From Styela clava (taxonomy: Eukaryota): 64,000 nucleotides of DNA. The translations under genes and the position numbers were made by a program. Location: contig NC_135259.1 in NCBI RefSeq assembly GCF_964204865.1, forward strand, positions 13,020,001-13,084,000, given 5' to 3'. Below, one piece after another: positions 1 through 57,858 of the stretch (position 1 is its first letter; every line of letters starts with the position of its first letter). The notes below the pieces were generated by a model that searched no databases, was not told where the DNA came from, and saw only the letters and a program-made list of their open reading frames with translations.

Positions 1-873
1 AACATCTTCTAAAACGAAGTGAGTTTTTTTATCAATACTTGACGAAACGGAAATACAAATATCAAATTTTGAAACGAAAATAAATTCTACAGAATTAAGA
101 CTCGAGAGTATATCTTACTGTGACACAAGCTCCGACATTTCACATTTTTAGGAAGATGTACAACACAATTATACATCAAATAATTTAATGTAAGGATAGG
201 ATTTGTATGATAAACATACTTGGCATAGATGAGGTTGTTGACATGTAGTGGCCAACGAAACTGGCATGCCTGAATGGGATTGTCTCAAATAATAACCAAT
301 CACGGTGCAAATTGAGTTAAGTTTGAAGATAATATCTAAAGTAACAATAGGATCGTTTCACGTAAATTATTATGTAGCTAGTATGCCATAACCGAAAAAT
401 ATTGTAAATAGTAGACATAAGTTTGGCCTTCTACTTCTTCAACAGCCACTCGAAAATAATTACGGACCTCCTGAATTATGCGCACCAAGATGGCGCACAA
501 CCTGAACTTAGATTGTGTATCAGGTAAGGGTTCAGGTTATGCGACATCTTGGTGCGCATATTCAGGAGTAACAGAATTTCATTTCTAAAAAGCTAGGTAC
601 ACGTTCAACTCTGATCGTATTTGAAGTTGTTTGGACTTCCGGTTTGAGGCCTACTAGTAATTCCAACTTAAGTGATTGCAAGTAATATCTTTCTATACAG
701 TCACATCAGCGGAGGCGGTGGGTGGAGACAAGGGAAAAGAAAAAGAAGCTTGGATAAAGAAGAAACTTTCGAGCAAGGTAACTAATAACCTTGGGCAAAA
801 ATTCATAATTTGCTATTTTTCTAATTACTCAATATTTTCTGCAGTTGACGAAGACGCCATTTTGTTTGAATGA
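1..873 (+). CDS. Secreted prepropeptide family member P0 (5' truncated by window edge); exons <1-18, 701-777, 845-873; ...TSSKTN|HISGGGGWRQGKRKRSLDKEETFEQ|VDEDAILFE*
   Basis: GT/AG sites (AA|gtgagt at 18, atacag|t at 700, G|gtaact at 777, ctgcag|t at 844) give an open frame with phases 2 and 1. Clear paralog of PA (HI.GGG.W core; DED..LF[DE] tail). Confidence 0.82.
465..569. mobile_element. About 105-bp hairpin MITE (family A)
   Basis: Long inverted arms ctcctgaa.tatgcgcaccaagatg...catcttggtgcgcatattcaggag; second copy at 6396-6504. Confidence 0.8.
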
Positions 874-1064
874 AGTGTTTAAAGATAGAGGAGACATGTG
901 AAAAATACCAAACATCTAAAAAGCATGTCAAAAACTTCCTTTCTACATATTTGTGTAATAAATGAAATATTGTTGTATGCTTCAGTTTGATATATTAGAC
1001 TTTAATGTGCTGGACCTAAAGGTTAGCAACTAAAGGAAATTCATACCAGAATTATCAGTAGGTT

Positions 1065-1206
1065 ATTGACTTGGACAGTAAATAGAGGAAAAAATTCATA
1101 ACACTAACTTTTGAAATCAAAAGAGACAAATAATTGACTTGGACAGTAAATAGAAGAAAAAATTCATAACACTAACTTTTGAAATCAAAAGAGACAAATA
1201 ACTGAC
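1065..1206. repeat. 68-69 bp direct tandem repeat, 2 copies
   Basis: attgacttggacagtaaatagaRgaaaaaattcataacactaactttt(t)gaaatcaaaagagacaaata at 1065 and 1133. Confidence 0.9.
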
Positions 1207-1478
1207 ACAATAACGAAATGGTTGCAGTGTTATGGTTTCGTTATCAGCCTGCTGGCTTACTTACTGGCTGGCGACGAGCACAAGCATAATTATCCAGTGA
1301 GAAGGATGTAGACTCCAAGTGTCCAAATTTTCCATGTGACACTACAAAGGATAGAAACATTTAGAAATTAAACGTAGGAGATATTTATAAATACGAGCAA
1401 TCAATTGCAAAATTCGAAAACGTGTTGGTTTCGAAAATCCCCAGAAGTGAATGTTGCTTTTGTGTAAGTCAAAAAATA

Positions 1479-1684
1479 GGTACTCCCGTAATGTGTGTAC
1501 CAGGTTAGGGTTAAGTCATATTTTTATTTCTACCTTATTTTAGTTCTATTACGAGTTCGGGGACTGTGTTAGCCAAGTGAATATACCCCCTGCCCATAGG
1601 TTTCCGTCCCTTTACACAACTTTATGTTAAGTAGGCGAACAATATTAGTTACTTCGATGTTGGTACACACACTTCTGGAGCGCC
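1479..1684. mobile_element. About 205-bp MITE related to family A
   Basis: Termini ggtactcc.g.aatgtgtgtacca...tggtacacacacttctggagcgcc; internal ccaggttagggtt shared with 6396-6504; flanked by A runs. Confidence 0.7.
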
Positions 1685-54119: not shown

Positions 54120-56614
54120 ATTTAAAGGGTTAGAAAGTGCACATAGAAGTAAACATATATTACTTAAGTTTGAACCTCAACGTTGAACTCAACGAATATC
54201 TATAAAGTTTATCACAATCGATCTAATGCACCCTTCTCTAAGAAACCCGACAAAGATATCAATTAGAAACCATTGTTACGGATTATCTTATATCAAAACT
54301 TTCTCAATTGACAACGCCTAGAAATTATTTAGATAATTTTTGCCGTAAGAATTATTTGTTTTGGATTTTTCCAGAAAAATGTGGCTTTACCTAATCGGCG
54401 AAATAAAATATAAAAATGAACTCAAGAGTTACATGAAAGGATTTTAACTAAGATAAGGCCAATTACATATTTTGATAACCTAATTGTATAGATCAACCCA
54501 CGCGTGCCCATATACATTGTTACAAATTATATATCATTGTATGGATAAATAAACTTACGGAGAAGCTAAAAACTTGGTTTCTATGTTTTGGTATATATCT
54601 ACATCAAGGGTACAAAGAGCAGATAAATACATCTTGAAACGCTATCTATTAAAGAAGATTTCAAAGATACTATAAACCTGTTAGCATCGATATTATAAAA
54701 GCTAGGTTTAAGTATTATATTTTGATACGCCACTCTTTCTTAACGCAAACCGTGACTATCACCATATTAGGCAGAAGATGTCTGGAACAGATAACGCTGT
54801 CAGTCAAAATAATTTACGTCTCTGTAAACGGAAATTTCGAGAGATCAAGGGTGTAGCTAAGGTTAACAAGAATTCATCATTTTTTTTTTACTTCAAATTT
54901 TCGAAAAGGGAGTTTCTTGTATTTACCAAATATAAGTATTATTTCAATAATTTTCCTCATTAACAAATACATAAAATTTAGATATAATTCAAAATTATTT
55001 GATTTCATACAAGGTTTTCTGAATAAAAGATAGGTACAACTTTTTCTTGATCTAAAATACCAATTTATGTTGAAAAATGCTGTTTTCAAATATGATTACA
55101 GTAAAAAAGAGAAAAATTCTCCAATTAGTCACACATTAAAAATTTCAAGTTATGATCTGGCGACAACATCATAATTTATGATTTGCGAGGAGCGACAAAA
55201 AGAGAATTTTGGTATTTCTTGACAACTTTAATGCATCGAAATACACTTAAAATATTCAATGAGTCAATATTTATCAGACTTTAGGGGACCGAATTAAGGT
55301 TTATGAAAAACCGTTGAAATAGACCCCTTTTGATAAATTGTGTTCAATCAAAATATTTAGCTCAAAAAAATTGATCGCAAACATAGAAATAACTAGTTTC
55401 TTTAAATTCAAGCAATCCAATTAGCTTTGAGAATTTTTTAACGAAATAAATGCTAAAATTGGCAACGCTGTGGTTTGGTATATATGTATTTGTTTATTGG
55501 TACAATGACCATAGTTTTTCGTAAAGAATTTAACTTTTTCAGAAATGTATTTTTCTGCACAATCATGTAAAGTCGAGTGCCGCCATTTGAAAAAATACAG
55601 ACCAATGCAATATCCCCTCGATGCGTATTTATTTGAATGAGAATAACTGGAAATAAATGAATATATTTTTGTTTACTTAATTTATAACGGAAATCTGACG
55701 TCAAATACCCCACCCATCCATACATTTCGCTTTTTGTGGTAAACAAAATTGGCGAAAATTGCAACATGATGCAGTTATATTTTAAGATATAATAGGTTAA
55801 AAATATCACAATGGTTTCGGAGAAATTCATTAAACGAATAAACATTTTTTAACTGGCAGATAGATATTTTAACAGATTTTTTCTAAAATTGATATTATGA
55901 AATAGCAAACTTCAAACTAAGTAACCTATTCATTTTTGAGAATTTTTTGGAGATTGAAAGTGAGGCAAAAAAATAGGTTATTAAACCAAAAAAAGTCTAC
56001 AAATTAAATTTACGTGGTTTGGGAATATCAAAAAAATTACTGATTATCCTGCGTTGCCTTAATCAGTGTTAACTAAATACAATTGTAGGACAGATTCCAA
56101 TATATTTTATTTGCATTTACTCAGAATTATTTATTGGACGTTTACAAGTAACCAAATTATCATATATATGATAAGAATTTCAGCCCAAACTGTCGGTTCT
56201 TGGACGGTTTCGGGAAATTCGATTTTTGCCTATCTACGAAGAGTTTCCATATTTGTATTGTTATTTTTCTGCCAAAGTGACTATAAGTATATATAAACGG
56301 AATGAACGAAATATTGTGATTTCCCATCTTTGTTACGTAATACCGGAACAATATACTAGCGGCAGAGTTATGCAAAAACTTCTTACGCGATGTGTCTGGA
56401 AAATGCGGGACGACGGGTTTGTTATTGGATATAATTATTTTGTCAATCTTTCAACGTATCATCAATAAAAAGGTTTCGTGAAAAATAATAAAAAAAAATA
56501 ATGTTTCAATTTCGTGAAAAAATACGGATATCTTTTTGAAAAATAAATTGAAAGCAATGCACGTGAAAAAGTATTACGCAACGCCTTTTTTCCGTATTCA
56601 TGGGTTCGAAAAGC

Positions 56615-56621
56615 TATAAAT
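56615..56621 (+). promoter_or_regulatory. Putative TATA box of PF
   Basis: TATAAAT followed about 100 bp later by donor CTG|gtatgc (56719/20), with an acceptor ttttacag at 57061 ahead of the ATG. Confidence 0.4.
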
Positions 56622-57106
56622 AGTCTTGGATAGCGAACGATATCTCATATACGAATTTTGCTGAGTATCACAGTATGATCTGTGTTGATCTTTTCGTGGT
56701 CTTTGCAAAATATTGTCTGGTATGCATTTAACTATGTATATAGCTGTATTCGAAATGTGTGGCTGTCGCCTCAGCGTATTTGAACGTCCGATGTTACTTC
56801 AGATTTTTAGTATCACCATTATAGATACTACCAAACCTTTTTATATAAAATTCATCATCAACAATTAAGAGCCACGTTGGCCAAATATCATTTGTTGTTC
56901 ATAAAACAAATAATTTTGAAATTGTTGAATCGTTTGACCATTCTTATAGAATAATATGAAACGATGTGGTTCGTTAACACGTATAATACTAAAATAGTTG
57001 AACCACAATAAAAAGGAAAAAATATTACAGCATTATTTCTCTAAATCTTTTCATTTTACAGTTTATTTAAAATACCAATTTCTGTGTAACAAAAATTGAT
57101 CACAAA

Positions 57107-57858
57107 ATGAATAAGTGCACACAGCTAGCTCTTTTGTTGTTGGTATGCTGCATTCTTACGCTGACAACAACTGTCGAGTGTGCCCAAACACAGGGCGAAA
57201 ATTTGGCAAGAAGGTATATAAACAAATAATCTTATTTCTTAATTGAGTGTAATTTTTCGATGAAGTTGATGTTCAAATCAACAGCATCATTTTACAAAAA
57301 TGAATTGAATAAAACTTCTTCGGATTCATTTTGTCAATAGAAGCATAGAATAAAATGCTGATTACACAAATTTTAAATAGTTAATTCATAAAGATTATTT
57401 ACCTATTTCAATTCGGGTATTTAAGCCACATTTGAAAAATTGAGATGAATTTCTAGTTATGATTATTCATTATATCATTACTGTTTATTGTTTTTATTAT
57501 TATGCACTCTTTTTTTTAATAAAGACATCGTACTAGTGGCACCTGGAGTGGGCTAGTAAAACGTGATCTCCGACGTCAAGAAGAACTGGAAACGCTTGAT
57601 GGTAAATACTTTAAGATTCCATATATAGTTATATAAGTTTCATTGAACAAAGAAATTGGTTCAGCAGAAATATTATATTCAAGATGTGATCGTAAAACCA
57701 ATTAATACAAGTTTTTGTATTGGTCTGCGCGATCTAAATAAATATTTTGTAACATAACAATACGAGTAGACGAATTTACTTTTATCTAATTTTGAAATAA
57801 TCCCTAAAATTCCACAATGAAACTTTTTGTTTCAGATATCGTCGACTTATTTGAATAG
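57107..57858 (+). CDS. Secreted prepropeptide PF; exons 57107-57213, 57525-57601, 57836-57858; MNKCTQLALLLLVCCILTLTTTVEC-AQTQGENLARR|HRTSGTWSGLVKRDLRRQEELETLD|DIVDLFE*
   Basis: Not in the ORF track. Signal peptide; an RR-flanked core followed by KR; DLFE tail; family intron phases. Probable non-coding first exon at about 56645-56719 behind a TATA at 56615. Confidence 0.87.

Follow-up and report, generated by a model that had tools for sequence, protein, structure and literature searches.

Granule sorting of the prohormone POMC is attributed, in an excerpt of one source, to binding of four of its residues, two acidic and two hydrophobic, by carboxypeptidase E (PMC5434747), and a second excerpt describes charged helices with a hydrophobic patch that act jointly with paired basic sites as granule-sorting domains (PMC2064127). 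As far as an excerpted account goes, I2-conotoxin precursors comprise a signal, a mature region and a short C-terminal postpeptide encoded in the last of three exons (PMC3862624), while botryllin of Botryllus schlosseri and the styelins are presented, again in part of the source, as small pre-propeptides with a signal from which the mature peptide is cut out (PMC9966394). Here we analyzed a 64-kb stretch of the Styela clava genome (C13:13020001-13084000, the window), in which an initial annotation had singled out eight acidic C-terminal strings containing Leu-Phe-Asp or Leu-Phe-Glu, hereafter LF[DE], as a docking site for a modifying enzyme or a granule-sorting receptor. These strings end a family of eight small genes, g1-g8, and LF[DE] probably serves as a signal while the precursor is packed or processed.

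Three kinds of precursor offer further background. The styelins and clavanins of S. clava have a polyanionic extension on the C-terminal side of a basic core, and such acidic C-terminal pieces are discarded pro-regions. In bacterial ribosomally synthesized and post-translationally modified peptides (RiPPs), a follower peptide beyond the core serves as the C-terminal recognition sequence, and the genes of the enzymes cluster with that of the precursor. For cone-snail postpeptides, Brown et al. reportedly described in 2005, to go by the title, a carboxy-terminal recognition site directing gamma-carboxylation, which would make them an animal example of a follower recognized by an enzyme.

Against these systems, the g1-g8 tails are like the prohormone sorting signals, so far as the excerpts describe them, in combining acidic residues with one or two aliphatic or aromatic residues in a lumenal segment with a dibasic site; however, the prohormone motifs are carried by a disulfide loop or an amphipathic helix, whereas the g1-g8 tails have no cysteines and, in seven of eight, a hydrophobic moment that does not rise above that of shuffled sequences. 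The I2-conotoxins are cysteine-rich toxins of a mollusc, with no sequence relation to g1-g8. The styelin, clavanin and botryllin precursors share with g1-g8 the format of a small pre-propeptide with a signal peptide, which is putative in g1-g8, the first two in the same species, but none appeared as a relative among the phmmer and Pfam results for g5, the member searched, and styelin- and clavanin-type cores are long cationic helices where those of g1-g8 are short His...Trp peptides. A fixed LF[DE] is not known to us from the extensions of these three groups. RiPP precursors and g1-g8 both have a conserved C-terminal motif outside the core; here, a sulfotransferase is the only enzyme gene with the cluster.

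Eight three-exon genes ending in LF[DE]

Every member of the family has three coding exons and two GT-AG introns, in phases 2 then 1. Exon 1 encodes Met, a hydrophobic leader and a variable peptide, and breaks off after the second base of a codon (AG in six genes, CG in g2, AA in g1); in all genes its translation opens with Met and then a hydrophobic run (at least 8 of 10 residues), a putative signal peptide. Exon 2, of 65 to 77 nt, begins with one base, encodes a short peptide with one Trp, a KR-type site in seven of the eight genes and then acidic residues, and ends one base into a codon. The coding part of exon 3 consists of two bases, 3 or 5 residues, Leu-Phe-Asp/Glu, 0 to 5 further residues and the stop codon. 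In all eight genes it lies directly behind a pyrimidine tract and an AG acceptor, and its 2 leading bases complete the exon-2 codon, corresponding to intron phase 1. This coding part measures 23 to 38 nt including the stop, and the exon runs on as 3′ untranslated region (UTR). What had been called a mini-exon is thus the short coding start of an ordinary terminal exon, with a 3′ UTR of at least 500 nt in g2. The tail strings themselves had been read correctly: seven of eight recur letter for letter in a six-frame translation, and the eighth, MDEDTVLFD, appears in the genomic frame as VDEDTVLFD because its Met comes from a codon split a/tg across the intron.

Splicing is documented for four genes, g2 to g5. 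RNA contigs from four public S. clava runs, with coded labels, were mapped to positions 5350-11300 of the window; these contigs, deepest at g2, cannot rank expression. Both introns of g4 are spliced in contigs of runs X5 and X7 (10520/10682 and 10750/11196, each GT..AG), and intron 1 of g3 is spliced in an X7 contig at a joint, 6209/6849, whose CT..AC borders place it on the minus strand. At the g2 tail acceptor, contigs of all four runs begin to fit exactly at 5611, and in three of the four they carry 187 to 288 extra letters at that point that are absent from 5350-5610, as expected for upstream exons. The g3 exon 2-exon 3 splice was not seen in contigs of the four runs, which read through the intron, most simply because the g2 3′ UTR overlaps on the opposite strand. 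The two genes converge: at 5611-6361 the g2 3′ UTR crosses the last coding exon of g3 on the opposite strand, and one X7 contig chains the last exon of g2 to the exon 1 side of g3. A protein search with g5 exon 1 found the NCBI entry 'uncharacterized protein LOC120338467 [Styela clava]' of 100 aa, and the three-exon model of g5 is identical to it, including both split codons and the ...YLFDVKRD end. The models of g1, g6, g7 and g8 follow from sequence logic alone.

LF[DE] is invariant across the family. In the tail alignment Leu and Phe are each present in 8/8 genes, and the third residue is Asp in six and Glu in two. By comparison, Met1 is the only invariant residue of exon 1, whose translations are 11 to 24% identical to that of g5, and Trp (8/8) is the only one of exon 2. 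The motif is therefore better conserved than the putative signal peptide and most of the core, as the initial annotation had proposed. Its fixity likewise stands, but it is not the sole fixed feature: Trp matches it in 8/8 genes, and a dibasic site and a His recur in 7/8 each.

The constraint acts on amino acids. Four Leu codons (TTG, CTC, CTT, TTA), two Phe codons (TTT, TTC) and three Asp/Glu codons (GAT, GAC, GAA) are used, and it is because different Leu and Phe codons give the same residues while introns and UTRs have diverged that we place the selection at the amino-acid level. Introns and flanks of five gene pairs are 0.40 to 0.60 identical over aligned columns, g6/g7 being highest at 0.57 to 0.60, and a multiple alignment around the tails shows no conserved flanking DNA. 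Unrelated AT-rich DNA would be expected to give about the lower of these figures. Since most pairs lie near that level, the copies are old, and the shared motif is not accounted for by gene conversion in recent times; most paralogue pairs are saturated. To gauge chance, we also counted a strict pattern, defined as AG with a pyrimidine tract, 2 bases, 3 to 5 codons, LF[DE] and a stop within 6 codons. The window contains 7 instances and the reversed window 0, against a mean of 0.4 (maximum 2) in 60 Markov-1 simulations. Within the window no place outside the family passes, and g2 misses solely through the pyrimidine-tract filter. A cause outside the protein, whether a splicing or 3′-end nucleotide signal, recent gene conversion or chance, could draw on the position of the motif, 11 to 17 nt from the splice acceptor. 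The synonymous variety of its codons, the unconserved flanks in multiple and pairwise alignment, which exclude recent conversion, and the excess of the pattern over expectation make such a cause highly improbable.

A second allele in the RNA contigs is very divergent, with 33 of 504 letters (about 6.5%) different and 4 gaps over 5611-6112. Within the g3 tail it differs at one position, 6011, where GAA becomes GAG without changing the residue; in the acidic stretch of g3 exon 2 it changes two residues, at 6151 and 6161. Two segments, 6345-6543 and 9330-9528, show very high summed contig depth in all four runs and many loose ends, and are likely repeat elements in or beside the g3 intron.

The features that accompany the motif are distributed as follows. 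A dibasic site (KR, KRKR, RKKR or KRKRR) stands 0 to 5 residues after Trp in seven genes, and His stands at the start of exon 2 in seven, at position 1 in six and at position 2 in g3 (Thr-His). Apart from His and Trp the cores are variable, so the released peptide is not the conserved part. A scan for Cys-rich open frames gave none in g1-g8, and Cys-rich cores were rejected in favor of linear ones. Gly directly before a basic site is the classical amidation signal, and one of the eight genes has it (g1, before KRKR). The tails are 17 to 24 residues long, vary in length and sequence outside LF[DE] and contain no cysteines; their net charge is -5 to -11 in all eight genes, forming a polyanionic extension after the basic core. 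LF[DE] itself lies 9 to 16 residues from the predicted cleavage site, 14 to 24 (counted to Leu) from Trp and 0 to 5 from the C-terminus. With 2 to 3 fixed residues in a variable acidic context and at variable distances, it behaves like a short linear recognition motif; we would describe it as such a motif in an acidic C-terminal pro-region, or postpeptide, of a family so far seen only in S. clava.

A second three-exon family downstream

About 2 Mb downstream on the same chromosome, a second family was read in 70 kb (C13:15128001-15198000; L011-L017). For the one copy with splice sites read, the model has three coding exons with introns in phases 2 then 1; the first junction falls inside an Arg codon, and only a very short part of the last exon is coding. 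Exon 2 encodes a short aromatic peptide, KKR and an acidic stretch, ending G/GT, and the last exon, which lacks LF[DE], reads E-RENMIIGQAKNEV or a similar sequence. Among copies of this second family the signal peptide and pro-region are well conserved. Judging from this shared architecture, g1-g8 and the second family probably belong to one superfamily.

A possible second case of the motif was considered and rejected. In seven second-family copies the genomic frame reads ...GDDIF[DE]-stop, but the stretch begins at the G/GT donor, the downstream exon (RENMIIGQAKNEV and variants) is conserved in eight copies, and the DDIF stop is lost in one; DDIF[DE] is thus probably intron read-through. If that reading as intron holds, LF[DE] is specific to g1-g8 and is not a general Styela tail signal.

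What may read the motif

The acidic tail fits a neutralizing pro-piece for the basic cores and basic cleavage sites, and the fixed Leu-Phe needs an extra reason. That selection reaches beyond acidity, as the initial annotation argued, is borne out by Leu and Phe residues that stay fixed while their codons vary; the docking or sorting reader it envisaged is hypothetical. We tentatively favor, at a probability of roughly 0.4, a role in biogenesis, in which the tail would retain the precursor at the granule and convertase machinery and would afterwards be lost. In this scheme the acidic residues of the tail would balance the charge of the basic cores, Leu-Phe and the dibasic site would jointly hold the precursor on the machinery of storage or regulated-secretion granules or on their membrane, and a convertase would cut at KR inside the granule, after which the tail would be discarded; cleavage at KR, granule sorting and loss of the tail are steps that we infer. 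By analogy, the proposal resembles the acidic-plus-hydrophobic sorting signals of vertebrate prohormones.

Several observations weigh against this scheme. In g6 the dibasic site is absent while Trp and LF[DE] are kept, and because the motif persists without the site, its role is independent of cleavage there. As modelled, the second family's tail lacks LF[DE], whereas a general sorting receptor should recognize the same signal in both families. An amphipathic-helix tail found no support: against 2000 shuffles the hydrophobic moment at 100 degrees falls at percentiles from 0.01 to 0.97, exceeding 0.95 in one of eight tails. The AlphaFold model of g5, made from a single sequence, is one long straight helix with a tail pLDDT of 58 to 68; the same model renders a stretch of about 40 residues in exon 1 as helix with pLDDT up to 90. 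The conservation of LF[DE] is, moreover, observed among paralogues of one genome, and we know of no expression site, granule localization or mature peptide for any member. Because the tail is family-specific and survives in g6 without a cleavage site, we lean slightly towards a specific partner over a general sorting receptor.

Such a partner could be a luminal enzyme that recognizes the tail, modifies the core, for example at its invariant Trp or leading His, and leaves the tail to be removed afterwards. Two to three invariant residues in a variable acidic context form a docking-like pattern, the core Trp is co-invariant in 8/8 genes, the motif outlasts the cleavage site in g6, and a tail that differs in the second family fits a specific enzyme better than a general receptor. 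An animal precedent may exist in the I2-conotoxin postpeptide, as described in the excerpted source (PMC3862624). The distance from Trp to Leu, however, ranges over 14 to 24 residues and offers no fixed geometry, and the sole enzyme gene beside the cluster is a Sulfotransfer_1 gene with no known peptide link; no candidate enzyme emerged. We know of no modification of these peptides, although heavily modified peptides such as styelin D occur in S. clava. On balance, docking of this kind is possible but unlikely. Its more specific form, an animal counterpart of a follower peptide in which a luminal enzyme grips the tail and modifies the Trp/His core by halogenation, hydroxylation or a similar reaction before the convertase cut, is distinctly unlikely.

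The acidic tail with LF[DE] might instead be the actual product, stored or secreted after the KR cut and acting by signaling, by binding metal or calcium or by inhibition, with the N-terminal parts serving as spacers or secondary products. Peptide-hormone precursors are usually conserved best in the active peptide itself; here the best-conserved part is the tail, and the upstream dibasic site would release it in seven of the eight genes. Outside LF[DE], however, the tails differ from gene to gene in sequence and in length (17 to 24 residues), and the motif is followed by anything from 0 to 5 residues; g6 lacks a site at which its tail could be released, and the acidic C-terminal pieces of the styelins and clavanins are discarded pro-regions. 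We regard a tail product as possible but unlikely. An intramolecular clasp, in which Leu-Phe packs on the exon 2 Trp and so folds the precursor into a hairpin, covering the basic core and offering the KR loop to the convertase, is improbable. It would account for Trp and Leu-Phe being the sole side chains invariant in 8/8 genes, present together in g6 and in a candidate ninth copy (g0, see below), but the variable Trp-to-Leu spacing and the low-confidence g5 model, a straight helix without a hairpin, speak against it, and covariation is unmeasurable since Trp, Leu and Phe never vary.

Gene models, relatives and surroundings

The positions of all exons are collected in Table 1. Profile searches were run exon by exon and not with joined spliced models.

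Table 1. Coding exons of g1-g8, in window positions; lower-case letters are bases of split codons and a slash marks an exon-intron border
Gene	Part	Positions	Strand	Reading and junction	LF[DE] position	Support
g1	exon 1, last 20 bases	1..20	+	ends aa/GTGAGT; ATG at L004:9885, 116 bases before the window
g1	exon 2	701..777	+	t + HISGGGGWRQGKRKRSLDKEETFEQ + g		exon-2 profile match
g1	tail	845..873	+	tt + DEDAILFE + stop	LFE 862-870	
g2	exon 1	3862..3998	+	putative signal and variable peptide; ends cg/GTTAGT		modelled by phase
g2	exon 2	4797..4873	+	c + HIRGGGAWSNSKSKRSAMKEEDIEK + a		exon-2 profile match
g2	tail	5611..5639	+	tg + DEDTVLFD + stop; 3′ UTR to at least 6112	LFD 5628-5636	acceptor in contigs
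g3	exon 1	6850..6992	-			contig joint 6209/6849 (cut +1), X7
g3	exon 2	6143..6210	-	g + THKIPIIWKRKRRELEIEEQEE + g		contig; exon-2 profile match
g3	tail	6005..6033	-	at + ISELFDEE + stop	LFD 6022-6014	sequence only
g4	exon 1	10377..10522	+			contig joint 10520/10682 (cut +2), X5, X7
g4	exon 2	10684..10751	+	a + RSSFSVTTFITTWRSKRDIPES + g		contig
g4	tail	11197..11234	+	ac + DEALFDMDVKN + stop	LFD 11208-11216	contig joint 10750/11196 (cut +1), X5, X7
g5	exon 1	14674..14876	+			identical to NCBI protein
g5	exon 2	15242..15306	+	a + HSHDQIKWRKKRNLDDSLENE + g		NCBI protein
g5	tail	15379..15413	+	at + VIYLFDVKRD + stop	LFD 15390-15398	NCBI protein
g6	exon 1	17750..17904	+	ends ag/GTACGT		sequence
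g6	exon 2	18587..18654	+	g + HSVRSNILWTFAGSNSGDSSDD + g; without dibasic site		missed by exon-2 profile
g6	tail	19411..19445	+	aa + VGDLFDVFED + stop	LFD 19422-19430	
g7	exon 1	21683..21840	+	ends ag/GTACGT		sequence
g7	exon 2	22357..22430	+	g + HASHRFGPVIWRYKRSDPDENIDY + g		exon-2 profile match
g7	tail	22864..22895	+	at + VADLFDVET + stop	LFD 22875-22883	
g8	exon 1	57107..57213	+			sequence
g8	exon 2	57525..57601	+	a + HRTSGTWSGLVKRDLRRQEELETLD + g		exon-2 profile match
g8	tail	57836..57858	+	at + IVDLFE + stop	LFE 57847-57855	

Searches for relatives returned little beyond the family itself. Over the whole 377-Mb genome, the exon-2 profile recovered seven of the eight copies in the window, missing g6, plus two weak matches elsewhere (C6 and C2), which were rejected as lying within longer open frames without an acidic LF tail. 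Apart from the candidate g0, no further clear member lies in the 30 kb that precede the window or the 20 kb that follow it. A profile built from seven exon 1 translations recovered the g5 protein alone among 20 candidates. Searched with phmmer against 1.84 billion representatives, the g5 protein found itself and three long unrelated proteins at E 4.5e-5 or weaker, and Pfam assigned it to no family. The best protein-atlas match, with a score of 0.77, was rejected because it falls within the range that the tool gives for shuffled proteins. Literature searches by LOC120338467 and on S. clava peptides returned nothing on the g1-g8 family, and CiEMa of Ciona, considered as a relative, is unrelated so far as the excerpt describes it (PMC10888236). 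As the proteins are short and fast-diverging, these blanks are no proof of absence.

The candidate g0 lies upstream of the window, at L004:6693-7990 (C13:13016693-13017990), and is unannotated. A piece resembling exon 2 has the sequence ...GLWPKRKRSLTKNDLE and comes close to that of g1; one candidate last exon encodes NTIFDFE-stop, with Ile-Phe-Asp. Exon 1 offers a single phase-2 donor, a weak one, and the N-terminus of g0 is shared by no database protein. Possibly g0 is the relic of a ninth copy, and it was left out of the count; if real, it would widen the motif to [LI]F[DE].

None of the genes neighboring the cluster is an obvious peptide-modifying enzyme. The Sulfotransfer_1 open frame at 24403-24963 (minus strand, E 3e-11) lies 1.5 kb beyond g7; an open frame upstream of it, at 27856 (minus strand), begins with a membrane-anchor-like run, and the two may be parts of one Golgi-type sulfotransferase gene. 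Between g7 and g8 are two similar exons, at 42366-42617 and 49291-49620, that resemble MFS/sugar transporters but fall below the Pfam cut-off, and beyond g8 there is an OATP transporter exon at 61831-62142 (E 1.7e-32). The window also contains a palindromic repeat of about 130 bases at 453-590 that matches in both orientations, with at least 81 matches genome-wide, and looks like a miniature transposable element. Identical open frames at 34873-35227 and 37896-38250, 3023 bases apart, indicate a recent direct duplication spanning about 3 kb.

In families of small secreted peptides, it is usually the signal or an N-terminal pro-region that is conserved and the product that varies. Precursors that pair a conserved pro-region with diversifying cores are in that sense a known kind; what is unusual in g1-g8, for which no relatives were found, is that fixity resides in a patch of three residues encoded by the last exon, at the far C-terminal end. 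Styela clava is already known for modified antimicrobial peptides, and this eight-gene peptide family of the same species is unstudied, at least g5 being annotated, as 'uncharacterized' only. Should the patch be a sorting or docking handle, it would provide a simple, mutable tag for following how peptides are packed or modified in the cells of an invertebrate chordate, and it would point to a partner protein. And if the tail does serve as a follower, one handle would let a fast-diversifying library of cores share a single modification pathway, as in RiPPs and with the cone-snail postpeptide.

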